The notes: generated by a model not told the origin, from the letters alone. A stretch of DNA of 64,000 nt from Felis catus (GCF_018350175.1 NC_058379.1:94116001-94180000), one strand, 5' to 3'; positions 13,490-64,000 are shown, numbered from the stretch's first letter. Numbers and translations are program-made.

Positions 13490-14000
13490 GCTTTCACTTT
13501 TGGGGGCATATGCCCAGAAGGGGAGTCGCTGATTCATATGGTGATTCTATTTGTAATTTTTTGAGGACCCGCTGCCTCACCGTCCACAACAACTGCTCCC
13601 TTTTAAGTTCTGGCCAGCAGTACACCCGAGTTCCAGTTTCTCCACATCCTCACCTGTTGTTTCTGTGTTTCTGATAATAACCGTCATCATGAATGTGNNN
13701 NNNNNNNNNNNNNNNNNNNNNNNNNNNNNNNNNNNNNNNNNNNNNNNNNNNNNNNNNNNNNNNNNNNNNNNNNNNNNNNNNNNNNNNNNNNNNNNNNNNN
13801 NNNNNNNNNNNNNNNNNNNNNNNNNNNNNNNNNNNNNNNNNNNNNNNNNNNNNNNNNNNNNNNNNNNNNNNNNNNNNNNNNNNNNNNNNNNNNNNNCCTT
13901 ATCTGATAGATGACTTGGAAATATTTTCGCCCATTCTGAAGGTTGCCTTTTCATTCTGTTGATAGTATCCTTTGATGGACTTTCTCGGTGCTACGCCCCA
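13490..14000 (-). mobile_element. L1 fragment spanning an assembly gap (N run 13698-13896)
   Basis: Antisense L1 ORF2-like text (KRQPSEWAKIF... in the ORF track). Confidence 0.7.
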
Positions 14001-16830: not shown

Positions 16831-18087
16831 TCTCCTGATGAGGCTGGGCCCTGGGACACGGGGGTGACCCAGACAGACACAGCCCCGCCCCACAGAGCTC
16901 TGAGTCCAGAAGGGTACAGACACATAACCAAAACAGGTACCTGCTAAAAACAGGGTCCTGGGGGTCACCATGAAGTGACCCACGAGCCACAATCCAGACA
17001 GGCCAGGAGAGAAATGGGTTATGAGACCTTCCTTCCAGGCTTCAGTAAAATCAGAACAGGGACACAAGTGTTGGCGGTGTGCCAGGACTTGGTCATGTCC
17101 TTAGGTTTAAAGTTGACCGTAGAAATGGCGGAGATTTAAAGAGCTGGCTGTCTGGTGGTTGGGTGGTTATGGGCCCAGGACGGGGGTGCACAAGAGGCCG
17201 CGTGCAGGCTGCGGCTAAGTCACCCAGGGTCTCCGTGATCTCACTAGAGAAGTGACCACATTGCATAAAAACGGAGGAGACCTAAAGGCAGAAGGCAGGA
17301 CAATGGGTGCCAGGGGCTGAGGAGGGGCTGTGCAGGTGCGTGCTGGTGACACAACGTGAGGTGCTCCCTGCCCCTGCACCCTGCACATGGTTATAGGCTA
17401 CGATGATAAATGTCAGGGGCGCCGGGGGGCTCAGCTGGTGAAGCGTCAGACTCTTGATTTCAGCTCGGGTCATGATCTCACGGGTTTTGTGGGTTTGGCC
17501 CCTCGTGGGGCTCTGTTGACAGAGGGGAGTCTGCTGGGGATTCTCTCTCTTCCCCTCCCCTGCTCGCACTCCCTCTCTCAAAGTAAAAAATTAAAGATGG
17601 TAAATTTTATACTGTGTATACTTTGTCATAATAGTAAAAGGATGATGCTCACTCTCTGGCTACCCTCTTCCGTCTCTGACGCAATGAAAGCAAAGCAAAC
17701 CAGTCCCGCGCAGGGGAAGCCGTCAAACTGGACGAGCTACCTTTTCCCTGCACGGGGTCTCCCCTCCCTCCCCCGGAGGTGGGGGCTGACTGCCGGGCTG
17801 GAGCCGCCACCTCCCCAAGCCCTCACCTCCCCGGGCCTCCTCCCAGGACCTGACGCCGGTACCCAGGGTGCCCGGCGCGGACAGCCACGCCCTGCCCAGG
17901 GATTCCCTCCTGGGCCCTTTTCCAGCGTCCGGGGGTCAGGAGTACGAACATCCAGGCTCTTCCAGTATTTGCCTCCGAAGCCCGAGCATCTCTGCAGCCG
18001 CCGCCGTCATCGCTGCCGGGATCTGCGTGGGTGAGGTGCGGCCCATCCGCCACAGCCACCTTCCCCCCCTCGCCCCCCCACCCCCGT

Positions 18088-18285
18088 CCCACCTGGACCA
18101 CCTGCCACCCCCCCCACCCACCTGGACCACCTGCCCCCAACCCCGACCCACCTGGACCACCTGCCCCCCCCCTCCCCACGACCCACCTGGACCACCTGCC
18201 CCCACCCCGACCCACCTGGACCACCTGCCCCCCTCCCCCCCACGACCCACCTGGACCACCGGGACGCCGACCCACCTGGACCACC
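18088..18285. repeat. C-rich minisatellite, 7 copies of the core cccacctggaccacc (period 25-35 bp), ending 13 nt before the HSBP1L1 ATG
   Basis: Cores at 18088, 18117, 18147, 18182, 18211, 18246 and 18271. Confidence 0.92.
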
Positions 18286-18298
18286 CGGATCACCCGAC

Positions 18299-18349
18299 AT
18301 GGACGCGCGGAGCCCCAAAGCCCCGGGCGGGGACGCGCTGCGGGACGCG
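18299..18349 (+). CDS. HSBP1L1: HSBP1L1 coding exon 1 (heat shock factor-binding protein 1-like 1)
   Basis: MDARSPKAPGGDALRDA, followed by the donor GCG|GTGAGT. Confidence 0.93.
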
Positions 18350-19185
18350 GTGAGTGGGGCCCCCCTCCCCTCTTCCGCGTCCCTCCTCACCCTCCTCACC
18401 GTCTGGGCGCCGCACCTCCTCCCGGACTGTGCGTCCCCCACCCCCCCATGGGGCGCAAACCCTTCGCGCCACCCCCCTTCCCGCTTCCGGTTCGCCGGGA
18501 GGAGCTCCCGGAGCAGGAGCGCCAGGCTGCGGGTCAGGGAGCGACTTCAAACGCTAGTCTGTCTTTTGAAAAGAATTTGTTAGACGTTATACATACTTGA
18601 GGCTACATTTTCTTGACAAAAGTGAAACAGAAACACCAAACCCTCTGAAGGGAAACTGCTCCCGATAGAGGCCGCAGCACCTTCATACGCACGTGCGGGT
18701 TGCGCACTGATACCCGTCTCTGTATTCTCATCTCCAAAATGGGGACAGAGACAGGTGCGGGGAGGCAATTATCCCTGGTTCCAGATTTCACTTGGTAAGC
18801 CACAAGGAGGCAATATGCAAATATGGCTTGTTGCGTATGGCCTGGTCGACAAATCCTGCCATCCCACCCCAGCTGGTAACTACCCAGAGTGCAGGGGAGA
18901 CGTGAGGCCCACGTGTGCTCTGGATGGCTGGTTCAGCTCTACTTAGGAATTCTTTGAGGGACTCAAGGTTATTAAGGCATTCTCCTATACTTTCTCTCGG
19001 ACATTTGATAGTTTCAGTGCTTACATTCAGGTGTATGATGATTTGGAGTTAATTTTGGGGTATGGTGTGAAGTACCTCTGCTTATTTAGTTAGTTATGTG
19101 TTTGGCTGTCTCATTGTCCCAGCACTGTTTTCAAAAGATTTTCCTTCGCCTTTGAATAGAAAGCTCTGGGCACCTTGTCCAAAAT

Positions 19186-41349: not shown

Positions 41350-42400
41350 TCTAGCGAATGTGCGGCACGCCAGGAATAAAGGCACGAGGAAGGAGCACTG
41401 GACGGATTCTAACCTCACTTTTAAATTCTACCGCCAAACAGACAAGCAAAAGCAATGCCGGTGAAATGAGCAAGCTGATCACGGAACGCAACACGAAGCG
41501 GCGGAGCTGCGTTACCTTTTCGGCTATACTGTACAGGACCTCGTCCATCTTCATGCAAGTGGGGTCCCAGTCGTGTCCAAACCGGATGACGACCACCCGG
41601 TCTTCCTCCGAAAGGATGGCCTGGTCCACCTGCCAGCCGTTGTGCAAGTGCGGGAGCATGTACGACATCTTCAGGGCCGCTCGGGTACCTGCGGGACAGG
41701 AATTCCACGCACCCGCTCCTTCCCGCCAGACCGCACTGCCGGCAGGGGGGCCACGCGTGGCCCCCGCCCTCACCCCTCGGTCCCGCCGCGGGGAGGGCGC
41801 AAGGGCCAGCACGAGACCCTCGGAAGGGGGCCTGGACCGAGGGGACGCCCGGCGGGCCACCGCCCGGGAGCGGGGCCCCGAGGGGGTCTCCCCCCACCTC
41901 AGTTCCCCACCCCCTGCCTCCCCGGACCCCCGTCCACTCCCGCTCCAACCGCACGCACCTCTGACACCTAGAGAGTCCCGCGCTGCGGTCCTTCCGGGCG
42001 TGGACCCGCGCCGGACAGTGCGTGCGCGCCGACGTGAGCGTGCGCGTGCCCGCCGACGTGCGGCGCGCGTCCGGCGCAGCTGGGCGCGACGTCCGGAGCC
42101 GGGGGGTGCTGGAGTCTGCGCGCTGGCGGTGCGCTGGCGGTAGGTGGTCTCCGCGTGGGCAGCGCGAGCGGGGTTTTCCCGGGGAGCCGCCGCGGTTGAG
42201 AGGAGCCTGTCTTTACCAGACCTGCTGTCGGTCCCAGTCGGGCCCGTCAGAGACCCAACTTCACCGCGCCGCCACGGTGACCCCCCGGGGAGGGAGGGGG
42301 CCGACCGGACCAACGAGAAGGGTTCGGGTCTGGACGGAGAGGACGCCTGCTACGCTGGGCGGGCGGGGGGTGTGGGGGGTGGGCAGGGGGTACTGAACTG
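41350..42400. promoter_or_regulatory. CpG island / TXNL4A promoter
   Basis: GC/CpG-dense. It contains a duplicated cgtgc(g/c)cgccgacgtg motif at 42021-42036 and 42045-42060. Confidence 0.85.
41516..41668 (-). CDS. TXNL4A: TXNL4A coding exon 1
   Basis: MSYMLPHLHNGWQVDQAILSEEDRVVVIRFGHDWDPTCMKMDEVLYSIAEK|GTAACG. Confidence 0.98.
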
Positions 42401-43099
42401 AGGATCCCTGTGACTGCGGGGGAGGGACTGGACAGAGAGGACCACTTGACCTGAGGTGTGGGAATGGGAGCTGGACTGAGGACCCCCGTGACTCGGGGGG
42501 AGGGGGGACGGGGTGGACAGAGATGACCCCCGTGACTGGGGGTTGGAGGACCGCTGGACACAGAGGATGACATCGGGAGAAAGGCTTGTCCTGTTCACTT
42601 CCACACCAGGTCCCCAAATTAATCAGGGCGATCCTGCTTTCTGGACATAAATGCAGTTGATTGACGTGTGAAACCGATGTGTTCAGAAGAGCACTCCCCG
42701 CGGAGGGTCAGATCCTGCAGTGAGATAGAGCCAAGGTGGAAGTTACCCTTCCGACCGCACCACCTGAGCTGAGCTTGTAGCTCGGGCGGCACTAAGCCCC
42801 TTCGTGTTGTGGTGCAATATCCACCTCCAGATAACAATTCTTTGTTAACAAATTCTGCTGCAATCTCATTTGCATGCTACAAGATTTCATTCATTCAAGT
42901 TAAGGTGGTTTTTCTCTAGAGTCGTGGAACCTTGAGGCCTGGGTGGCTCAGCCGGTGGAACGTGGAACCTGGAACCTTGGACTCTTGATTTTGGCTTAGG
43001 TCATGACCCCAGATCATGGGATTCAGCCCTGTGTGGGGGCTCCCTGCTGAGTATGGAGCCTGCTTGGGATTCTCATTCTCTGTCTCGCTCTCAAAAAAA

Positions 43100-47227: not shown

Positions 47228-50200
47228 GTACAGTTTCATTCTTCTGCATGTTGCTGTCCAGTTTTCCCATTTCCATTTGCTGAAGAGATGTCTTTTTTCC
47301 ATTAGATACTCTCCTGCTTTGTCAAAGACTGATTGACCATACTGTTGTGGGTCCATTTCTGGGTTNNNNNNNNNNNNNNNNNNNNNNNNNNNNNNNNNNN
47401 NNNNNNNNNNNNNNNNNNNNNNNNNNNNNNNNNNNNNNNNNNNNNNNNNNNNNNNNNNNNNNNNNNNNNNNNNNNNNNNNNNNNNNNNNNNNNNNNNNNN
47501 NNNNNNNNNNNNNNNNNNNNNNNNNNNNNNNNNNNNNNNNNNNNNNNNNNNNNNNNNNGCTGTTCTGGGTCCCTTGCATTTCCATATGAACTTTAGGATT
47601 AGCTTGTCAATTTCTGCAAAAAAAAGGTACCTAGGATTTTGATAGGGATTGTGCTAACTCTGTACACCATTTAGAGAATACCATATTACCATCCTAACGA
47701 TGTTAAGTCTTCCATGGTTATAGGATGTCTTTCCATTTATGTAGGTCTTCTTTATTTCTATAACTTTTATATTTTCCAGTGTTCACATCTTGCACTTTTT
47801 TTTAGGAGGAGGTAAAATTTATCCCTAAGTATTCTTTTTTGATGATATTTAAATGGAATTGTTATTTTAAATATTTTCAGATTATTCATGACTAGTGTAT
47901 AGAAATACAATTGATTATTATTATTTTCTCCTGTTTATTTTTGAGAAAGAGCTCGCATGTGCTTGAGAGCAGGGAAGGGGCAGAGAGACGGGTACAGAGG
48001 ATCCAAAGTGGGCTCTGTGCTGAAAGCAGAGAGCCCGATCTGGGGCTGGAACTCAAGAATCGTGAGGTCATGACCTGAGCTGAAGTCGGGGGCTTAACCA
48101 ACTGAACCACCCAGGTGCCCCAGAAATACGATTGGTTTTTGTATACTGATCTTGCATTCTGCAATCTTGGTGAACCATCCATTACTTGGAAAAGTTCTTT
48201 ATTTGCATTCCTTAGGATTTTCCCTACATAAGATCTTGCCATCTGGAGATAAGCACAGTTTTACTTCTTGTTTTTCAGTCTGGATGTTTTTTTTTTCGTT
48301 GCCTAACTGCCCTGGCTGGGACGTGCAGTACAATGTTGAATAGAAGTGGCGACAGCAAGCATCTCTTGTTCCTGATTTTAGGGGGAAAGCATTGAGACTT
48401 TCACTATTAAGTATGAGGCTTGCTACGGGTTTTTCACAAATGCCATTTATGAGGTTGAGGAAATTCTGTTCTTATTTTATTGAGAGTTTTTTGTCTTGTT
48501 TCTTATGAAAAGTTGTTAGGTTTTGTGAAATGCTTTTTATGCCTCTGTTGAGATGATCATGTGGGTTTTGTCTTTTATTCCCTTAATATGGAGTATTCCA
48601 TTGACTTTTGTATGTTAAATCAAATTTGCATTCCTGGAAAAATCCTATTAGGTCACATTAACTTTTAACAATATATTGCTGGAATAAGTTTGCTAGTGTT
48701 TTTTGAAGATTTTGTGTCTAATTCATAAGACATATCAGTGTGTAGTTTTCTTGTTGTCTTTGTTTGATTTTGCTGATAGTGGCCCCGTAGACTGACTTGA
48801 AAAGCCAACAATATAGGCAAGAAAAATTGGTTATTTGGCCAAAGCTCCTCATCTTTCCTTCCATTCATTCACAACATATCCGATCATCTAGAAAATGGAA
48901 ATAAGTAGGCTAAATCATTCTGAGTGAATCAGACTGCTTGAATTACATCTTATCGTTAGAAATTGAATTCTTCATTTAAAAAATGACTAAACATAAGCAT
49001 TAAGTATTGCTTTCTGGAATTCTCAAGAGCAAGACAGATATTTGGAAGGAGCAGGTGTCCCTGTGTGTCGAATTGTGAAAGGATACATGTGTCTAAACAG
49101 AGTGCCCCTTCCTTCAGAGCAACTGGCCTGAGTTAAGTTGAGGAAGAGAGCAATTTGACTGAACTAATTGTTACTGATGAAAAGTGACTGGAGAGCCTTA
49201 TAACCCTCCCAGAGGAATTTTCATTTTTAAAAGAAAAAATGTTTTAAGTCAGATGTAAGACAATGTTAAAGTGAGACTTTCCTCTCTCTCAAATTTCAGC
49301 AGAGGCCCCAAACTGAAAATAAATGATTTAAAATGCTTACACGTTTCAGGGGCGCCTTGGTGGCTCAGTCGGCTGAGCATCTGACTCTTGATTTCGGCTC
49401 AGGTCATGATCCTACAGTCTGTGGGTTCCAGCCCCACATCAGGCTCTTCACTGACAGCGTGGAGTCAGTTTGGGGTTCTCTCTGCCACTCCCCCCTTGTG
49501 CTTTCTCTCTCAAAATAAATAAACTTAAAATTTTTTTAAATAAAATAAAATGCTTACATGTTTCAGAGCAAGAGGCCACACTGGCTTTCTCCAGATCCTG
49601 CAGAAGAAAGAATAATTTGCATATCGTTTGTCCATCACTCCTTAGGATACATAAGAGGAAGTGCAAAAATGTTTTGGGGAACAGTGTGACATCATTTCTT
49701 TGGAGGAAGCTGTGCACATGTGTATTTCCATGTGCATTCTCTTCCCTTTGGAAAAGAAAGGGGTATTCCACCCCACCTCAAGCCAAGCAAAGGAGCCCCA
49801 AAAGAATCCCTCACTTTAAAAAAATTTTTTAATGTTTATTTTTGTTGAGAGAGGGAAGGAGCAGGGGAGGGGCAGAGAGAGAGACACACAGAATCCAAAG
49901 CAGGCTCCAGGCTCTGAGCTGTCAGCACAGAGCCTGACGCGGGGCTCAAACTCACCAATAGCAAGATTATGACCTGAGCCGAAGTCAGACGCTCAACCAA
50001 CTGAGCCACCCAGGTGCCCCTCTAAAGCTTTTATTTACTTATTTTTGAGAGAAAGAGAGAATTGGGGAGGGACAGAGAGAGAGAGGGAGACAGAGGATCT
50101 GAAGCGGGCTCTGTGCTACAGCAGAGAGCCCAACGCAGGGCTCGAACTCAGGAACTGTGAGGTCATGACCCGAGCTGAAGGCAGACGCTTAACCTACTGA

Positions 50201-52303: not shown

Positions 52304-52859
52304 TGGGGCGCCTGAGTGGCTCAGTCAGTTGGGCGTCCGACTTCGGCTCAGGTCATGATCTCGTGGTCCGTGAGTTCGAGCCTCGCGTCGGGCTGTGTGC
52401 TGACAGTTCGGAGCCTGGAGCCTGTTTCGGATTCTGTGTCTCCCTCTCTCTCTGACCCTCCCCTGCNNNNNNNNNNNNNNNNNNNNNNNNNNNNNNNNNN
52501 NNNNNNNNNNNNNNNNNNNNNNNNNNNNNNNNNNNNNNNNNNNNNNNNNNNNNNNNNNNNNNNNNNNNNNNNNNNNNNNNNNNNNNNNNNNNNNNNNNNN
52601 NNNNNNNNNNNNNNNNNNNNNNNNNNNNNNNNNNNNNNNNNNNNNNNNNNNNNNNNNNNGTGGCTTAGTCCGTTGAACTTCCGACTCCAGCTTAGGTCAT
52701 CATCTCACAGACGATGAGTTCGAGCCCCACATTGGTCTTGCTGCTGTCAGCAAAGAGCCCACCTCAAATCCTCTGTCTCCCTCTCTCTGCCCCTCCCCTG
52801 CTTGCACTCTCTCAAAACTGAATAAAAAATTAAAAAAAAAAATTCGTGTCCCCCCCCCC

Positions 52860-54420
52860 AAATAAAATACCTAGGAATAAACTTACCCTAAGAGGTGAAA
52901 GACCTGTACTCTGAAAACTATAGAACATTGATAAAAGAAATTGAAGATGATGCATAAGAAATAGACATTTTGTGCTTGTGGATTGGAAGAACAAATATTG
53001 TTAAATATCTACACTGCCTAAAGCAATCTACAAATCTAAATCAATCCCTACCAAAATACCAACAGCATGTTTCACAGAACTAGAACAAACAATCCTAAAA
53101 TTTGTATGGAACCACAAAGACTCTGAATAGATAGCCAAAGCAATCTTGAAAAAGAAAAAGAAAACTGGAGGTATCAAAACTCCAGGCGTCAAGTTATATG
53201 ACAAAGCTGTAGTAATCAAAACAGCATGTTACTGACACAAAAATAGACACATAGATCAATGGAACAGAATAGAAAGTCCAGAAGTAAGCCCACATTTATA
53301 TGGTCAATTAATCTTCAACAAAGGAGGAAAGAATATGCAATGGGAAAAAAGACAGTCTCTTCTTTGGTGTTGGAAAATGGTGCTGGGAAAACTGGACCAC
53401 TTTCTTACACCGTACACGAATATAAACTCAATATGGATTAAAGACCTAAATGTGAGACCTGAAACTATAAAAATCGTAGAAGAGAACACAGGCAGTAATT
53501 TCTCCAATATTGGTCATAGCAACATCTTTCTAGATACGTTTCCGGAGGCGAGGGAAACAAAAGCAAAAATAAACTGTTGGGATTACATCAAAACAAAAAG
53601 CTTCTGCACAGCAAAGGAAACAACCAACAAAACTAAAAGACAACCTACTGAATGGGAGAAGATATTTGCAAACGACATGTCCAATAAAGGGTTAGTATCC
53701 AAAATATGTAAGGAACTCACACAAAACTCAACACCCAAAAAACAATCCAATTANNNNNNNNNNNNNNNNNNNNNNNNNNNNNNNNNNNNNNNNNNNNNNN
53801 NNNNNNNNNNNNNNNNNNNNNNNNNNNNNNNNNNNNNNNNNNNNNNNNNNNNNNNNNNNNNNNNNNNNNNNNNNNNNNNNNNNNNNNNNNNNNNNNNNNN
53901 NNNNNNCAAAAACANNNNNNNNNNNNNNNNNNNNNNNNNNNNNNNNNNNNNNNNNNNNNNNNNNNNNNNNNNNNNNNNNNNNNNNNNNNNNNNNNNNNNN
54001 NNNNNNNNNNNNNNNNNNNNNNNNNNNNNNNNNNNNNNNNNNNNNNNNNTGATTCAGGAATTGCTCTAGTGGGTATTTGCCCAAAGAATACAAAAACACT
54101 AATTCAAAGGGATTTGTCCTATGTTTATTGCAACATTATGTACAATAGCCAAACTATGAAAGCAACCCAAGTGTCCAAGTGTCCATTGATAAGTGAATGA
54201 ATAAAAAAGATATGATATATATATGATATATCACATATTCATATTTATATGAATATTTTTCAGCCATTAAGAAGAACAAAATGTTGCCATTTGCAACAAC
54301 ATGGATGGATCTAGAAAGTATAATGCTAAGTGAAATAAACAAGTCAGAGAAACACAAATACCATATAATAATTTCACTCAAATGTGGAACTTAAGAAACA
54401 AAACAAATGAACAAAGGGAA
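52860..54420 (+). mobile_element. L1 ORF2 C-terminal part and 3' UTR, with N gaps (53754-53906, 53915-54049)
   Basis: [35 protein letters not shown]...[37 protein letters not shown]. Confidence 0.92.
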
Positions 54421-54759: not shown

Positions 54760-55571
54760 AAAAATCCATAATTCATGAAAGAGGCCAAAATATCAACATT
54801 AACAGGGGTTTGGAAGCCGTTGACTCCAGCTATCATGGATGACACTGAGAGGTCCAGGACTTCAGTGGAGGAAGTAACTGCAGATGTGGTGGAAATAGCA
54901 TTAGAACGAGAAGTAGAGCCTGCGGACGGGACTGCTGCCATCTCATGGTAAAACTTGAACCAGTGGAGAGTTGCTTCTTACAGATGAGCAAAGACGTTGG
55001 TTTTTCAAGATGGAATCTACTGCTGGTGAAGGTGCTGTGAAAATTGTTGAAATGACAACAAAGGATTTAGAATATGATGACATACCTTTAGTCGATANNN
55101 NNNNNNNNNNNNNNNNNNNNNNNNNNNNNNNNNNNNNNNNNNNNNNNNNNNNNNNNNNNNNNNNNNNNNNNNNNNNNNNNNNNNNNNNNNNNNNNNNNNN
55201 NNNNNNNNNNNNNNNNNNNNNNNNNNNAACTTCACTGCTGTCTCGTTTTAAGAAATTGTCGTGGTCGTCTCAGTCTTCAGCAACCACCACCCTGATCAGT
55301 CAGCAGCCGTCAACCCCGAGGCAAGACCCTCCACCGGCAAAAAGATGATGACTCACAGAAAGCTCAGTGATGGTTAACATTTTTTAGCAATAAGCTTTTC
55401 AAATTGAGGTATGAACTTTTTTTAGACATAATGCTCTTGCGTACTTAACAGGCTACAGTATAGTGTAAACATAATTTTTATAGGCACTGGGAAATAAAAA
55501 TCACTTGACTTGCTGTATTGCGATATTCACTTTATTGGAACCAGACTTGCAATATCTCCAAGGTGTGCTTG
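54760..55571 (+). mobile_element. Tigger1 3' part and terminal repeat (N gap 55098-55227)
   Basis: aaaatatcaacattaacagg...gaggaagtaactgcagatgtggtggaaatagc...ttgcaatatctccaaggtgtgcttg resembles the Tigger1 3' end. Confidence 0.88.
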
Positions 55572-56710: not shown

Positions 56711-57083
56711 GCTGAAGGGCAGAAATAAAGACTCAGGCAGAATAGGGAGGAAAGTGGGTGTGATGGAGACATTGGTAACTTCAGAGGGGTGGGTCTATTG
56801 TCCTTCAGGTTTTTTAGGGACTTGTCCAGGAAATAAAATGGATCCCAGTGTTGATGTAATTTAGAAAATCTAGAGTAACTGCAATATAATGATTTATGAG
56901 AAATACATATTTCATCCTTCAGAGGACCAAACTACTTCTCAGATATATTTGGTCTTCATCCATAGTTCCTGGGAACACTTCAGAGCCAGAAAGGTGACAA
57001 GGATGTCTTAATGAAGGAGACTTCTGGACCCCACTCAAGGGCGGGGCTATTGCCAGGACGACCAAGCAGGTGATCAGAGGGTT

Positions 57084-57354
57084 GGAACTTCCGGCACAAC
57101 CCCCCCACCCCTGCGGAGAGGGGAGGGGCTGGAGGCTGAATTGGCCAATGGGAACTTCCAGACCCACCCCTGACGCCTGCATAGAGGGGAGGGGCTGAAG
57201 GCTGAATCAACCAATGGAAACTTCCGGCCCCACCCCCGACCTCCTGGAGAGGGGAGGGGCTAGAGGCTGAATCGGCCAATGGCCAATGATTTAATAAATG
57301 GTGGGGATACAAAGAAGCCTCTATAAAAGCCTTTTCTGGAGACGGCCACACTTC
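57084..57354 (+). promoter_or_regulatory. Putative LTR promoter: three ~65-bp ETS/GC-box/CCAAT modules, TATAAAA (57322-57328), and an Inr-like CA at 57349-57350
   Basis: Motifs are read directly; promoter activity is inferred. Confidence 0.55.
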
Positions 57355-57400
57355 GGCACCCGAACTCTTCCGTGTGCCGGTGGGCCGGACCCCAGGCTCC

Positions 57401-57490
57401 ATGAGGACAGAAACTCGAGTTGGGCACCTCGCTCTGTGGATCTCTCCCATCTGCGTGTTGCTACACACTCTTTGTATCTTTAAGGAACCG
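57401..57490 (+). CDS. Putative LTR-derived upstream coding segment (30 codons), in frame with the dehydrogenase after splicing
   Basis: ATG at 57401, no stop, phase-0 donor CCG|GTAAGC at 57490/57491, and phase-0 acceptor at 57918/57919. There is no transcript evidence. Confidence 0.35.
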
Positions 57491-57921
57491 GTAAGCACAG
57501 GTCAGCCTTCCCCTGAGCTCTGTGAGGCTCTCGAACAAGTTAACAGAATCGAAGGATTCTGCAGAATCGGCTGCTGGTTGGTCACAGGCACAGGTACCTG
57601 GTACCTGTGACTAGAGTCTGAAGGTGGGGGCTGGGAGGGGGCATCTTATAGGACAGAGTCCCACGCTGGGGGGCGGGGGGGGGGGCATCTTATAGGACAG
57701 AGTCCTTAACCCGTAGGATGTGATGGTGTCTCTGGTAGATAGTGTCAGAATTGAATTGAATTCTGGGACACGCTGCTGGGATCCTGAGAACTGCTTGGAG
57801 TTGCGGGTGGGGGACTTGGAAATTGGTGCTCAGAACCTTAAAAGAGCAACAGAGGAGCATATTGATTGTCTCTTAAAGACTGTCTTTGACAGCAGAAATT
57901 GTGCTTCTCTTCCTGCAGGCC

Positions 57922-58303
57922 ATGGGGGATCAGGACTTACCTGGCGTTTTGGTGTCTGGATTGGAAGGACCTCATGGTATATGTGAGGATCACATTGGAG
58001 ATCTGCAGAAACACTTTACTCTCATTACTCTGCAAGAATTTTTGGAAAATAACACACGATTCGGTCCAAAGGTCCAAGCTGTATACATCTGGGGCGGAAA
58101 GCCAGCCGTTACCCAGGAGCTCCTGCAGAGTCTGCCCTCCTTGAAGATAATTGCCAGTGCAGGAGCAGGTCTAGATCACCTGGACCTGAAGCTCATTGCC
58201 AGCTGTGGTGTGAAGGTGGCCAACACACCACAGGCGGTTTCCAGTCCCACAGCAGACATGGGGATGGCCTTACTGCTGGCCGCAGCTCGCAGAGTCGTGG
58301 AAG
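57922..58303 (+). CDS. GRHPR/GhrB-like D-2-hydroxyacid dehydrogenase, coding exon 1
   Basis: Acceptor cttctcttcctgcag|gccATGG with strong Kozak context. MGDQDLPGVLV...LPSLKIIASAGAGLDHLDLKLIASCGVKVANTPQAVSSPTADMGMALLLAAARRVVE(G) contains the family motif GAGxDHxD...VxNTP. Donor AAG|GTACCC. Confidence 0.93.
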
Positions 58304-59158
58304 GTACCCAGTCCTTGGAGATGCTGGTTTTCCAAAGACAGCAGATGACAGATACTTAATGCAGATGATTACATAATGTTATCTTCAAACTACAGGTCTT
58401 TCCTGGGCCCTGATTTCTTCCAGGACTTTGTTGCACTTGAGAACTGGAGTCACTTTCAGTCGTTTGCAGCGTACTTAGTGCCTGAGCCCAGCTTCCCAGC
58501 ACATATCGGCCATTTTCTCCCCCACCAGATTCCTCTCATTCACAGGCAGTAAACGTGTGTGTGGAGTAATTTCAACAACGAAATTACTATAGAAATGCCC
58601 TTGGGGTGATTCTTTGGTCAGTCAGCATGCTACTCTTGGTTAAAGACCCACGAGTGAATAGGCAGAACCTGACCTCTCCACACAGGGGACATCTCTGGGA
58701 ATATCCCCAGGAAAGGCAGGGCAGCAGTTCAACACCCCTCAGTCCCCCAGTCCTCCTGATGGAGCTCTGAGCGAAGAGGAAGATGAAGCTTTGACGAAGA
58801 GGCTTGAGGAAAGAGGAGACAGGAATCAGGCTCTGGTTCGGATTCTGGTTGCGGGTTCACGCACATGCACACACACCAACATACCAACACCAGCAAGTTT
58901 TAACGAGAAATCCTGCCGTAATGTAAAAGAAGTTGGTATTTCAAAGCTTTGCACCAGGACGCTCTGGTTTTGTTATGAGGAAACTGTCTTTGTCCCTTTC
59001 CTTCACCCCTTGCAGAAACCCTTGTCTTCTGTCAAGAGCTGCATGAGGGCTGTGTCTGCCGCAGGCACCCTCTAACTCACTACTCTGCCCCAGTAAGGTT
59101 GTGGATTTCTGTGTCTGGTGACATCCGCTCTGACCACTCTGTCCCTTGTATATTTTAG

Positions 59159-59330
59159 GTCATAGGTTGGCTATTGCACCGGATACAGAGAACTTTTCTG
59201 CAAACTGGATGGGTCAAGAAGTTACAGGGGCCACTCTGGGAATCATCGGCATGGGCAGCATTGGCTATAAGATTGCTCAGAGGGCCAGAGCATTCGAAAT
59301 GAAGATTCTGTATCACAATAGGAAACGCAG
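59159..59330 (+). CDS. GRHPR/GhrB-like dehydrogenase, coding exon 2 (Rossmann GxGxxG)
   Basis: tattttag|(G)[56 protein letters not shown](R)|GTAAAC; phases match its neighbours. Confidence 0.95.
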
Positions 59331-60786
59331 GTAAACATTCGGAAAATGGACTTGAAATTAACTGAGCAGAACGTATACCATCACTGCCTTAAAATGGCTG
59401 GGATATAGGAGCCCTCTGTTTTTCATAAGACTCTCCTACTCTTTCTCTCCAAAAAATAGGACTGATTGTCAAGAAAAAGAAAAAGAAAAAAAAAAAGACT
59501 GATTGTCACAAAAATTGTGATATTTTTATGATTACCTAGGAATGTGGCTGTGACTTTTTTATTGAAAATTTTCACCAAAAAAGAGATTTTAACTCACAGC
59601 TTTGTTTTTTGTTTTTTTTTTAATTTCTAAAGTGTTTTTTTTTCAAGGAAGCTTTCCATACCCACTGAGCAATTTGGTTCCTTTGTGTGCACTTCCTCCC
59701 TTAGCCTGACACCCGGTCTTACTGATTCTGTCTCCAAACAGCCTTCAGACCTGCCTGTTCTCTCTCACCTCATCGATGCCACTGGGCTCAGGCCCCGTCC
59801 TTTCTCACCTGAAATACATATTCTCCTAACAGTCTGCTCACATCTGCTCTTGAACCTCCCACTCTCCTTGCAAACCAGCCAGATGATGGCCATTGTTTAC
59901 AACCTTTACTGGCTTCCCACTGCACATGGAACACATTTCCGGCTGGTGAGCAGTTTATGGATGTATGGGGAGCTGAGAGATTGTGCATTAGAACTGTGCC
60001 CATTTTTCAGTCACTGTTTGCACCATGGGCAGTGGAGGGACTTAGGTAGATGTGACGACTTTCCTTGTGATGAACACGCAGGCACAGAGGCCAGGGTTCT
60101 CCCAGGACAAGGTGTGTGGTGTGGGCAACGTATTCATCTTTCCTTTGGGCTGTCCCCTGACCCAAACATGTGTTTTGTATTCCATATATGTATTCCATAT
60201 TTGCATAGCAGTGGAGGTTACCCGGCATGCTGTGGCCTCCGGGTTCTTGGAATTTCTGTTGAATAATCAGTTGTTTGGGATGGCCAGAGCAGGAGTTAAA
60301 CAAATCCTGCCTGCATCGGACCCTTGGGTCTTTGCTTTGCGTTTCATAGGCAACGTTCCAAGGCCCTCTCCTGTTTTGTTTGTTTTCTAGAGACTGTGAT
60401 GTGTTTGCTGCACTCAGCAATGCTCTGTGGTCACAGAAGTACACACTCCTGCTCTTACTTGGGAGTGGGACCCACTTCCTGCCAGTAATGTCCTGTCATT
60501 GCTGAGCGCATGTCCGATGCACAGTCAGGCTCACACCTGTCTCTGGGGGCTCAAATGAGAAGAAGCTCCTGGCCGCAAGGAGCTTCAATGTGGGGTGCAA
60601 TTCTGCAGACCCAGAGGCCTCGCCTCAGAGGTCCCGAGGGGCCCCCAGTGTTTCCATGGTGGGGGAGGATCCTGGACCCAGCAGCAACAGGCCCAGTCTT
60701 TGGCTCCCCTCAGAAACTCCTTCCTGAGGTGCCGTGATGAATTCCTGACTGGAGAACATGGTGTTTCTTCCTTGTCCCCTTCATAG

Positions 60787-60965
60787 GAAATTAGAGGAGG
60801 AGGAGGCTGTTGGGGCAACTTACTGTGAGAGTCTGGATGACCTGCTTCAGCGATCGGACTTTGTGCTGTTGGCCGTGAGCCTGACGCCCCAGACCCAGAG
60901 GCTGATTGGGAAGAGGGAGCTGAATCTGATGAAGCCCACTGCCATTCTCGTCAACATCGGCAGAG
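60787..60965 (+). CDS. GRHPR/GhrB-like dehydrogenase, coding exon 3
   Basis: cccttcatag|KLEEEEAVGATYCESLDDLLQRSDFVLLAVSLTPQTQRLIGKRELNLMKPTAILVNIGR(G)|GTACTT; includes the catalytic Arg motif NxxRG. Confidence 0.95.
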
Positions 60966-61464
60966 GTACTTGCCTGCACCACGGTCTGTGCGGAGGCCCG
61001 AGGGGCTGCAAAGTCTGCAAAGTCGGCCCAGCTCGACTTTCTCCTGGACAGCTGTGGGTCCAGAGAGTCCGTGCGCACTGGCGGATGATGAGCTCAAGGG
61101 AGTTTCTATTTAGAAATATTTCTGATTTTTGTTTTCACATCATTTCGAGCCTCAAATTAGTAACAAAAAGGATGAGAATAGCACAGTACGGGGTTTTCAC
61201 ATCCCAATTAGGGCATCTACTTTGGGGCATCACAGTTTGGTCTTCTAGGTGTGATTAAGCAAAATTTATGGGGATACATTTTCTGAGCCTTCACTTAAAA
61301 AAAATTTCTTTTAAGTGTGAGAACGAGGCGGGGAGGGGCAGAGAGAGGGAGAGAGAAAACCCCAAGCAGGCTTTGCACTGTCAGCGTGAAGCCCAGTGTG
61401 GCCTGAGCCAAAACCAATAGTCAGATGCTTAACCAACTGAGTCACCCAGGTACCCCTTCACTTT

Positions 61465-61881
61465 TTGGTTTTAAGTTTATTTATTTTTAGAGAGAGCGAG
61501 AGCAAGAACACATAAGCAGGGGAGGGACAGGGAGAGAGAGAGAGGGAGAGAGAGAAACCCAAACGGCTCCACACTGTTAGCACAAGCACAGAGCCCGACT
61601 CGGGGCTGGAACTCAGGAACTGAGAAATCATGACCTGAGCTGAAATCAAGAGTTGGACGCTTCCGACTTCAGCCAGGTCACGATCTCGCGGTCCGTGAGT
61701 TCGAGCCCCGCGTCAGGCTCTGGGCTGATGGCTCGGAGCCTGGAGCCTGTTTCCGATTCTGTCTCCCTCTCTCTCTGCCCCTCCCCCGTTCATGCTCTGT
61801 CTCTCTCTGTCCCAAAAATAAATGAATTAAAAAAAAAAAAAAGAGTTGGACGCTTAACCAACTGATCCACCCAGGCGCCCC
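61465..61881. mobile_element. Minus-strand CAN-SINE carrying a 5'-truncated young plus-strand SINE (61663-61840)
   Basis: 15-bp TSD aagagttggacgctt at 61648-61662 and 61841-61855. Confidence 0.9.
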
Positions 61882-62151
61882 TCTGATACTTTACTTTAAA
61901 AAATAAATAACAGTGTTAGTTTGGTTATTTGGCATTTATGCAGTGCTTTGTGTTTACAGGCAAGAGGGAGTTGGCCCTGTGCTGATACCAAATATTGTGG
62001 GCTGGTGTGACATTTATAAAGAGTAGAGGATCAGTGCTGACATCAGACATCCAGGCCACTCACCTTTGTGGGGTGGGGGGCCAGAGTACATACGACTAAC
62101 AACAGCCACCCGTGTATCATCTGTAAAACAAGGAAAACAATGCTTGCCACA

Positions 62152-62884
62152 TGAGATAGTGTAATTTGTAAGAAATACATATTTGGTCATTCAGTTGTGG
62201 TTTTCATCCATAATTCCTGGCTCTTTCCTCACCAAATTGACTAAGTGTTGAGAGTGATAAAGGTGTCTTTCGTTAATGGAGACGGCTGGACCCCACTCAA
62301 GGGCGGGGCTGTTGCCAGGACGACCAACCATGTGATCAGAAGGTTGGCCCTTCCAGCCCCACCCCCGACCTCTGTGGAGAGGGGAGGGGCTGGAGGCTGA
62401 ATCAGCCAATGGCCAAAGATCTAATCAACTGTGGCTATACAAAGAAGCCTCGGTAAAAATGCCAAAGGACCGGGTTCACAAGCTTCTGGAGATTGGGAAG
62501 AGTGCTGTGCGGGGAGGGATGGAAGCCCCACAGCCTTTCCCCAGACCTGTCCCTATGATCTCTTCCTCTGGCGGTTGATTCTTAGCCTTTGTCACCTCCC
62601 TGAGCCACCAGGTGAGCGGCAGTGTTCCCCTGAGTTCTGTGAGCCGCGGCAGCAAATTGCCAGTTGGTCAGAAACACGAGTAACAAACAGCCTGGGACTT
62701 CCGACCGGTGTCCGAAGTCGGGGTGGGGGCATCTTACAGGACTGAGCCCTTACTGCGCAGGATCTGATGCTGCCTCCGGGTGGACAGTGTCAGAATTCGC
62801 AGGCACCCTGCAGGTGTCCCGAGAACTGCCTGAGCTTGTGTGGGGGGGACCCTCCCTACCCCAACTTTGGAACCGGGTCCAAGA
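62152..62884 (+). mobile_element. Second MER21-like solo LTR, in dehydrogenase intron 3
   Basis: Shares long blocks with 56880-57834 (ggaccccactcaagggcggggct.ttgccaggacgaccaa, ggagaggggaggggctggaggctgaat..ccaatggccaa). Confidence 0.8.
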
Positions 62885-63725
62885 ACTCTAAAACAATTGT
62901 TGAAAGACCAAAAACCCTCATGGGACCGAGATAATATGCTTCAGAGTTCTCTGAAAATTCAGGCCATCTAGGTGAGCAGGAAGGACCAGTGCGTATTAGG
63001 TACCTTCAGGAATGTCAGAGGCTGGCGAGCACACTACAGATTCTGGAGAAGCAAACGCCCCAGGAAAGCCTCTGGGACTGGGCTTCTCCCCCAGCAGCAC
63101 CAGCATACCAGGGCTGTGCCCCGACCAGCGGGCCGGCCGCTCCCAGCCCGTCAGCAGAAAGGAGGCAGTCTTTGGGCCCCTTGCAGGGCTCTGCTGGAAG
63201 GAAAGGGCTTTCTTCTCAGCTTCTACTCAAACATGTCCTGCTTTTCTGTATTTGAAATGACAGTTACAGGATCGTGCTTGTGGCTTAGTTTTTTCGTGTG
63301 CATATACAGCTATCTGGGGGCTGTGTCCTCAGCCTGAACTCCTAGGTGGTGCTGGGAGGTGGTGTAATAAAATGAGACGGGCCCGGCTTGAGGTCAAACA
63401 AACCTGGGCTCAGATCTGAGTCTATATGTTAGAAGCTGTGTGACTTTGGGTGTTTGTAACCTAAGGGCCTCAGTTTCCTCAAGTATAAAATGAATATTGA
63501 CTTCGCCAGGTTAGTGGAGGATTCGGTGAAGGCCTGAGTGCGCTTCCTAGTATGTGGTGGGCTCACAATGTCTGATGATGAACTGGCAGAATGACACTCA
63601 CGTGCTCTTTGTCAGACCTTTGACAAGATCAGGATGTGTTTGGAATAGCGGCTAATGTGACCAAAGCATCTATCCCATGTACTCTTAATGGTAGCGACTC
63701 CAGAGGAACTGTCTTGTTGACGCAG

Positions 63726-63822
63726 GTCTGTTAGTCGATCAGGACGCCCTGGTGCAGGCTCTTCAGACTGGGGTTATTAAAGGAGCAGCACTGGACGTGA
63801 CGCACCCGGAGCCCCTGCCCAG
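63726..63822 (+). CDS. GRHPR/GhrB-like dehydrogenase, coding exon 4 (not in the ORF track); the final exon(s) with the catalytic His lie beyond the window
   Basis: ttgttgacgcag|(G)LLVDQDALVQALQTGVIKGAALDVTHPEPLP(R)|GTAAGA; the DVxxxEP motif carries the catalytic Glu, and phase 1/phase 2 fit. Confidence 0.93.
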
Positions 63823-63957: not shown

Positions 63958-64000
63958 TGCTTTGGGCTTTTTCAGATGTGTTGTCACAGACCTGTAGTCG

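Follow-up and report, generated by a model that had tools for sequence, protein, structure and literature searches.

Background

Glyoxylate and hydroxypyruvate reductases belong to the D-2-hydroxyacid dehydrogenases (2HADHs). A survey of this superfamily defines the GHRB subfamily (glyoxylate/hydroxypyruvate reductases B) together with motif rules for cofactor and substrate: a Gly-Ser motif after the catalytic His and an Arg-x-x-Met motif in helix 5 go with hydroxypyruvate/glyoxylate activity (PMC6303947). GHRB enzymes are promiscuous, and function can be extrapolated among them only to a limited extent (PMC6303947). As to the cat, passages of PMC13566007 and PMC9202916 that refer to Goldstein et al. 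(2009) state that homozygosity for a GRHPR mutation leads to primary hyperoxaluria type 2 in this species. We describe here a relative of these enzymes in a 64,000-nucleotide stretch of Felis catus DNA (NC_058379.1:94116001-94180000; 'the window', in which all positions are counted and which ends at 64000). At 57922-63822 on the plus strand, the window very probably holds the first four coding exons (residues 1-277 of 334) of an annotated cat gene, a vertically inherited, GHRB-branch paralog of GRHPR that is old in deuterostomes, lies between TXNL4A and RBFA, and is under purifying selection in Feliformia.

Four exons of an annotated cat dehydrogenase gene

The region consists of four open, colinear exon-like pieces, E1 to E4, with AG and GT at each internal border (Table 1). 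Their phases are compatible, the codons split by introns read Gly, Arg and Gly once joined, and in-frame translation of each exon met no stop or frameshift. Searched singly against Pfam, E1 matches 2-Hacid_dh (PF00389; 1.7e-15), while E2, E3 and E4 match 2-Hacid_dh_C (PF02826; 6e-13, 1.8e-15 and 3e-08) at profile positions 26-68, 74-128 and 131-160 of 178. Colinear matches of this kind are far beyond chance and confirm the four-exon observation; the last 18 profile positions, which include the catalytic His, lie beyond the window end. The original prediction, made from the sequence alone, had described four intact exons with canonical, phase-compatible splice sites and no lesions, and our reading and translation bear it out. 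The motifs it quoted, GIIGMGSIG, NIGRG (which spans the E3/E4 junction), DVTHPEP and YHNRKRR, are all present in the translated exons.

We reached named proteins by searching the whole library with E1 in HMMER and by querying the word index twice with database proteins; whole-protein work used database protein P0310. This is Felis catus XP_011286417.3 (334 aa), named 'probable 2-ketogluconate reductase isoform X2' in RefSeq, and all four exons are 100% identical to its residues 1-277. The gene is thus already annotated and not an orphan, and its novelty is low: it is an ordinary, correctly annotated RefSeq gene. The same exon borders are recovered by tblastn of cheetah and hyaena proteins on the window. 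Against Pfam, the full cat protein matches PF02826 at residues 115-294 (7.3e-61) and PF00389 across residues 27-325, showing the two domains, the catalytic one interrupted by the NAD-binding one. A protein-atlas search with E1 returned bacterial single-domain clusters only. Literature searches by gene names yielded list entries only, with no paper characterising the vertebrate enzyme and no assay behind the name '2-ketogluconate reductase'. In that sense the gene is uncharacterised, as had been claimed; it was nevertheless already annotated, as XP_011286417.3 and XP_006939048.2.

Table 1. Coding features located in the window (64,000 nucleotides)
Feature	Positions	Strand	Borders	End phase	Residues	Content and identity
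E1	57922-58303	+	ATG 57922; donor GT 58304	1	1-127 and first base of Gly128	Carries the RefSeq isoform X2 start codon and encodes most of the substrate-binding (catalytic) domain; 127/127 identical to P0310
E2	59159-59330	+	acceptor AG 59157-59158; donor GT 59331	2	128-185	GIIGMGSIG (GxGxxG dinucleotide fold) and strand-B end YHNRKR, no acidic residue; 56/56 identical to P0310
E3	60787-60965	+	acceptor AG 60785-60786; donor GT 60966	1	185-245	Ends in NIGR with catalytic Arg244; 59/59 identical to P0310
E4	63726-63822	+	acceptor AG 63724-63725; donor GT 63823, leading out of the window	2	245-277	Asp268 and catalytic Glu273 (DVTHPEP); 31/31 identical to P0310
Alternative upstream coding exon, isoform X1	57401-57490	+	donor GTAAGC 57491		30 residues	MRTETRVG...KEP
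Alternative terminal coding piece, isoform X3 (intron 3)	61960-61985	+	acceptor AG 61958-61959			From the P0314 sequence
TXNL4A exon 1	41513-41668	-	donor GTAACG			Pfam DIM1 3.8e-21; MSYMLPHLHNGW...

Conservation and maintenance in cat

Among 132 non-feliform orthologs, 110 columns reach a conservation of at least 95%; cat has the majority residue at every one of them, and 95 of the 110 fall in the part encoded in the window. In an alignment of 31 sequences from cat to bacteria (A1), R244, D268, E273, H292 and the glycines G158, G160 and G163 are invariant, and H180, N181 and R182 nearly so. A maximum-likelihood tree of 45 proteins, which is not a tree of all 2HADH subfamilies, follows the species tree. 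Path lengths from the laurasiatherian node are about 0.10 for cat, 0.07 for horse, 0.105 for bat, 0.115 for pig and 0.12 for bison; the feliform branch is ordinary and not accelerated. Felids and hyaenas separated tens of millions of years ago, and general mammalian substitution and indel rates make it very unlikely that intact full-length models would be found in both without selection.

For orthologs, expression is indicated indirectly. A proteomics study of pork includes the pig protein (LOC100157017, A0A287A5X0), and mRNA of the chicken ortholog (2KTGRL) is reported from liver. Several full-length orthologs come from Logan contigs so short (1.1-2.6 kb) that these must be spliced transcripts; one such contig protein groups with those of horse and rhino, another with that of a bat.

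Beyond the window, the C-termini differ between groups: felids and hyaenas end in ...NEVRLNWDNSVA / ...NEVRLKRDNSVG (334 aa; P0310, P0212), most other mammals in ...NEVLLK (328 aa; P0196, P0206). The 6-residue extension is feliform-specific and presumably arose from a changed stop codon. The segment PHAGSAT of felids reads PHVGSAT in hyaena and PHIGSAT in pig.

Distribution and apparent losses

We took the distribution of the gene from two lists of the best 120 clusters, out of 8000 word-sharing candidates scored; these lists reach marsupials at about 70% identity. Full-length orthologs are annotated as proteins of 320-350 aa. Within Carnivora they come from more than 10 felid species and two hyaenas, that is, from Feliformia only among the matches listed. 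Other laurasiatherian orthologs occur in pig, peccary, hippo, bison, deer, camels, horse, rhinos, many bats and a shrew; those of Xenarthra and Afrotheria in sloth, armadillo, elephant, dugong, tenrec, aardvark and sengi; and those of Euarchontoglires in rabbit, pika, kangaroo rats, gopher, gundi, ground squirrel, tree shrew, lemurs, galago and tarsier. Outside placentals, the gene is found in marsupials, birds, crocodilians, turtles, squamates, a frog, teleosts, bichir (UniProt name Zgc:136493) and rays and, among invertebrates, in a tunicate, amphioxus, sea urchins, a crinoid and Lingula. The chicken ortholog (2KTGRL, LOC100858664, chromosome 2) has been listed among genes 'lacking mammalian homologs' (PMC6839265); this listing is wrong, since most mammalian orders have orthologs. 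A carnivore-specific gene is likewise excluded by orthologs in most mammalian orders, including those of many herbivores.

No anthropoid, muroid, caniform or cetacean ortholog stands among the best 120 clusters of either search, a pattern that argues for loss or non-annotation in these groups. The human genome has four 2HADHs (PMC6303947). This count, together with the lack of anthropoid proteins in the two lists, agrees with the original statement that human has no such gene in this interval, and both human and mouse seem to be without it. The proposal of a paralog retained in carnivores and lost in some mammals stands only in part: losses are apparent, but the gene is kept in most orders and, in Carnivora, by Feliformia only among the matches listed.

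Caniform items in our lists are short exon-1 open reading frames only (P0003 and P0163-P0165, including Vulpes lagopus CAK7305808.1). Read from protein fragments, not DNA, these fox and canid frames show a 5-residue deletion relative to cat and have Ile/Val-Lys, in the same frame, in place of the cat G/GT donor, so the exon-1 donor GT is gone. They are changed at 5-6 of 28 conserved exon-1 columns, against none in cat, pig-like and other fragments. In canids, the gene is probably a pseudogene.

A more speculative hypothesis, which we hold to be rather improbable, is that the family represents an ancient deuterostome GHRB-type reductase with a physiological substrate of its own, kept by selection in most mammals but gone, through independent losses, from anthropoids, muroid rodents, caniforms and perhaps cetaceans, and overlooked since human and mouse lack it.

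Fold, nearest relatives and predicted activity

The AlphaFold model of the cat protein, built with alignment A1, has a predicted local distance difference test score (pLDDT) of 92.8 and a predicted template modelling score (pTM) of 0.88. Searching PDB sequences with phmmer gave the Bacillus subtilis entry 9m0t at 216 bits, Pyrococcus glyoxylate reductases at 200-207 and human GRHPR at 182.5. The Foldseek top set, with template modelling (TM) scores of 0.83-0.86, comprises 9m0t (0.86, 38% identity), the Pyrococcus GRHPRs (38%) and human GRHPR (34%); HPPR and the 2-keto-L-gulonate reductase 6pex are further neighbours in fold or PDB searches. In NCBIfam the best models are glyoxylate reductase and GhrB (NF011938). 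By PDB, fold and NCBIfam matches, the nearest characterised relatives are thus GHRB members. The names in use are not uniform: the molecule in 9m0t is called 'probable 2-ketogluconate reductase', the entry itself a glyoxylate/hydroxypyruvate reductase in its title.

Both substrate motifs of the subfamily, Gly-Ser (in PHAGSAT) and Arg-x-x-Met (RRQM), are found in P0310 (PHAGSATHQARRQMM), encoded downstream of the window. Trp144, in NWMG, lies near the place of a dimer-contributed Trp thought to exclude large substrates. These motifs point to glyoxylate/hydroxypyruvate-type substrates rather than 2-ketogluconate and would lean against large substrates in general. The strand-B end, YHNRKRR, has basic residues and no Asp, a feature compatible with NADPH preference but not proof of it. 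The protein is most likely a GHRB-type reductase of small 2-oxo acids that probably uses NADPH. On the motif evidence we would rate NADPH as the rather likely preferred cofactor, and glyoxylate/hydroxypyruvate as best substrates by a narrower balance of probability. The earlier assignment to an NADPH-preferring GhrB/GRHPR branch thus stands as regards GHRB relatives and the missing Asp; since cofactor use varies within GHRB, the pattern does not prove the preference.

We may picture the enzyme as a homodimer of two-domain subunits, in which the Rossmann domain (GIIGMGSIG, Asp268) would bind NAD(P)H and the basic strand-B end, lacking an acidic residue, would favour the 2'-phosphate of NADPH. 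Arg244 would hold a small 2-oxo acid whose C2 receives the hydride, the proton coming from the Glu273-His292 pair. Our results establish the identity of the gene, its intactness within the window, its orthology, conservation and fold, while cofactor, substrate and physiological role are inferred.

Several points weigh against this assignment. The NCBIfam equivalog cut-offs are missed by a wide margin (258.6 against 455 for glyoxylate reductase, 240.6 against 492 for GhrB), so that activity cannot be transferred safely. GHRB members vary in their cofactor use (PMC6303947). The Trp, in the alpha-B/beta-A loop, is displaced by one residue in the alignment with the archaeal enzymes. The cat RefSeq protein has His292, but its exon lies past 64000 and is known from that protein alone, not from this assembly. 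Finally, the literature searched contains no assay of any enzyme from this vertebrate clade.

Alternative explanations and the oxalate question

These doubts leave room for a functional enzyme with another substrate or cofactor, for instance one acting on 2-keto-D-gluconate, 2-keto-L-gulonate, an aromatic or another small 2-oxo acid, or preferring NADH as donor. We consider this a serious possibility, although not the favoured one. The promiscuity of GHRB enzymes and the limited extrapolation of function among them (PMC6303947) speak for it, as do the separation of this clade from GRHPR since before vertebrates, the displaced Trp and the presence of 6pex among structural neighbours. So does the feline disease: as the cited passages have it, GRHPR-mutant cats are hyperoxaluric in spite of having the present gene, whose product thus does not replace GRHPR in vivo. 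Non-replacement fits a different substrate, tissue or compartment, and a non-overlapping role. However, small-substrate glyoxylate/hydroxypyruvate reductases are marked by Gly-Ser, Arg-x-x-Met and a Trp close to the dimer-contributed position, and the closest structures are all enzymes of that kind.

The same facts bear on the suggestion, made in the original prediction, that an extra glyoxylate/hydroxypyruvate reductase was retained in carnivores as an adaptation of oxalate handling to a meat diet. The family likeness to glyoxylate reductases and the retention in felids and hyaenas would agree with it, yet pig, horse, rhino, bison, deer, camel, elephant, dugong, rabbit and pika, herbivores or omnivores, keep the gene, the matches listed contain no full-length caniform protein, and the fox copy looks broken. 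With the hyperoxaluria of mutant cats, as related in those passages, added to this, the dietary explanation is very improbable and the claim of a role in oxalate handling by obligate carnivores is not supported. We give equally little credit to the idea of incipient decay in cat, in which a still transcribed gene would be turning into a unitary pseudogene, with its intact exons as leftovers, as apparently happened in canids. Repeated mammalian losses are apparent, with anthropoid, muroid, caniform and cetacean proteins missing from the best-120 lists; fox fragments carry the deletion, the lost donor and the altered conserved columns described above; RefSeq includes a truncated isoform X3; and PHAGSAT in felids contains an Ala that is Val in hyaena and Ile in pig. 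Against decay, cat deviates at none of the 110 conserved columns, full-length proteins are modelled in all those felids and both hyaenas, the feliform branch is of ordinary length and the catalytic triad is intact in the RefSeq protein.

The preferred reading, a selected GHRB-type reductase, leaves a modest but real interest in its patchy pattern of repeated loss and in an uncharacterised enzyme: a conserved gene of the glyoxylate/hydroxypyruvate reductase kind is apparently missing from the two best-studied mammals, human and mouse. If the enzyme does have its own substrate and has been lost repeatedly, its presence or absence would alter glyoxylate/hydroxypyruvate or other 2-oxoacid metabolism between species and would bear on how useful pig, rabbit, cat and mouse are for modelling hyperoxaluria. 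Knowledge of the substrate would help judge how far oxalate and glyoxylate findings can be transferred between model species, and the repeated loss could be compared against diet or metabolism.

Neighbouring genes, isoforms and repeats

TXNL4A exon 1 lies about 16 kb upstream of the dehydrogenase gene on the opposite strand, is transcribed away from it and adjoins a CpG-rich kilobase (42001-43000). On the other side, the window ends before the next gene. Two gene models in other species nevertheless join the dehydrogenase to RBFA (Pfam PF02033): P0350 from Camelus bactrianus and P0029 from the manta ray Mobula birostris. In both, the dehydrogenase part stops at profile position ~162-166, near the border that matches the donor following 63822. 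These models may be either read-through transcripts or annotation fusions; their occurrence in ray and camel implies that the dehydrogenase and RBFA are neighbours on one strand from rays to mammals. The order TXNL4A-dehydrogenase-RBFA is thus supported, its RBFA link being old, and the predicted location between the two genes agrees with our results. Recent bacterial transfer is excluded: the tree follows the species tree, introns stand at conserved places and the RBFA synteny extends from ray to camel.

Isoform X1 (XP_006939048.2, 365 aa) begins in an alternative upstream exon that we located by tblastn of P0221. This exon is 100% identical to isoform X1 (30/30 residues to P0307), has no Pfam match and joins in frame to an acceptor at 57919, where E1 begins in this isoform. 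Isoform X3 (P0314, 283 aa) has the tail ...NIGRGKRELALC (G-KRELALC) followed by a stop; its product would end before, and hence lack, the catalytic Glu and His.

The region 57016-57815, 5' of the dehydrogenase start and including the X1 exon, has a second copy in the same orientation in intron 3 (62278-62850; 71-87% identity in four blastn pieces). It also contains an internal duplication, 57155-57217 and 57221-57328 both matching 62350-62458. This repeated region is an interspersed repeat. Intron 3 further contains elements like carnivore short interspersed nuclear elements (SINEs) at 61300-61870, with an A-rich SINE tail at 61805-61851. Elsewhere in the window, further CpG-rich kilobases are found at 1001-2000 and 18001-19000, and six runs of N, which are gaps or masked sequence, at 13698-13896, 47366-47558, 52467-52659, 53754-53906, 53915-54049 and 55098-55227.

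Comparison with known systems

The RefSeq entry 'probable 2-ketogluconate reductase' is the same gene; nothing differs in the window, which is without the last 57 residues. Its name comes from an annotation source. Named orthologs of the gene are pig LOC100157017, chicken 2KTGRL/LOC100858664 and the zebrafish-type zgc:136493.

With human GRHPR (PDB 2gcg, 2h1s) the cat RefSeq protein shares the fold (TM 0.83-0.85), the Arg-Glu-His triad, the Gly-Ser and Arg-x-x-Met motifs and the absence of Asp from the cofactor loop. It differs in sequence (34% identity), in its locus beside TXNL4A and RBFA, and in belonging to a clade of its own with invertebrate members, separate since before vertebrates; human GRHPR scores 182.5 bits to the cat protein where placental orthologs score 550-740. 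GRHPR itself is excluded by this identity and locus, and a separate feline GRHPR is known from disease genetics. The Pfam matches and the distance from the human structures agree with the prediction of a D-2-hydroxyacid dehydrogenase distinct from GRHPR.

GhrB of E. coli also reduces 2-ketogluconate, an activity that the motifs of the cat protein do not favour. Its model NF011938 is the second-best NCBIfam match (2.1e-71, residues 20-318) and it belongs to the same GHRB subfamily (PMC6303947); at less than half of the model cut-off, however, the cat protein is not an equivalog. The best matches overall are the B. subtilis enzyme 9m0t and the Pyrococcus enzymes (2dbq, 5aov, 6bii), at 216-200 bits, TM 0.84-0.86 and 38% identity, which share with the cat protein a strand-B end of the form ...ILY(H/Y)(N/S)R.... 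They differ in being prokaryotic, in NCBIfam equivalog cut-offs that the cat protein does not reach, and in a loop Trp offset by one residue.

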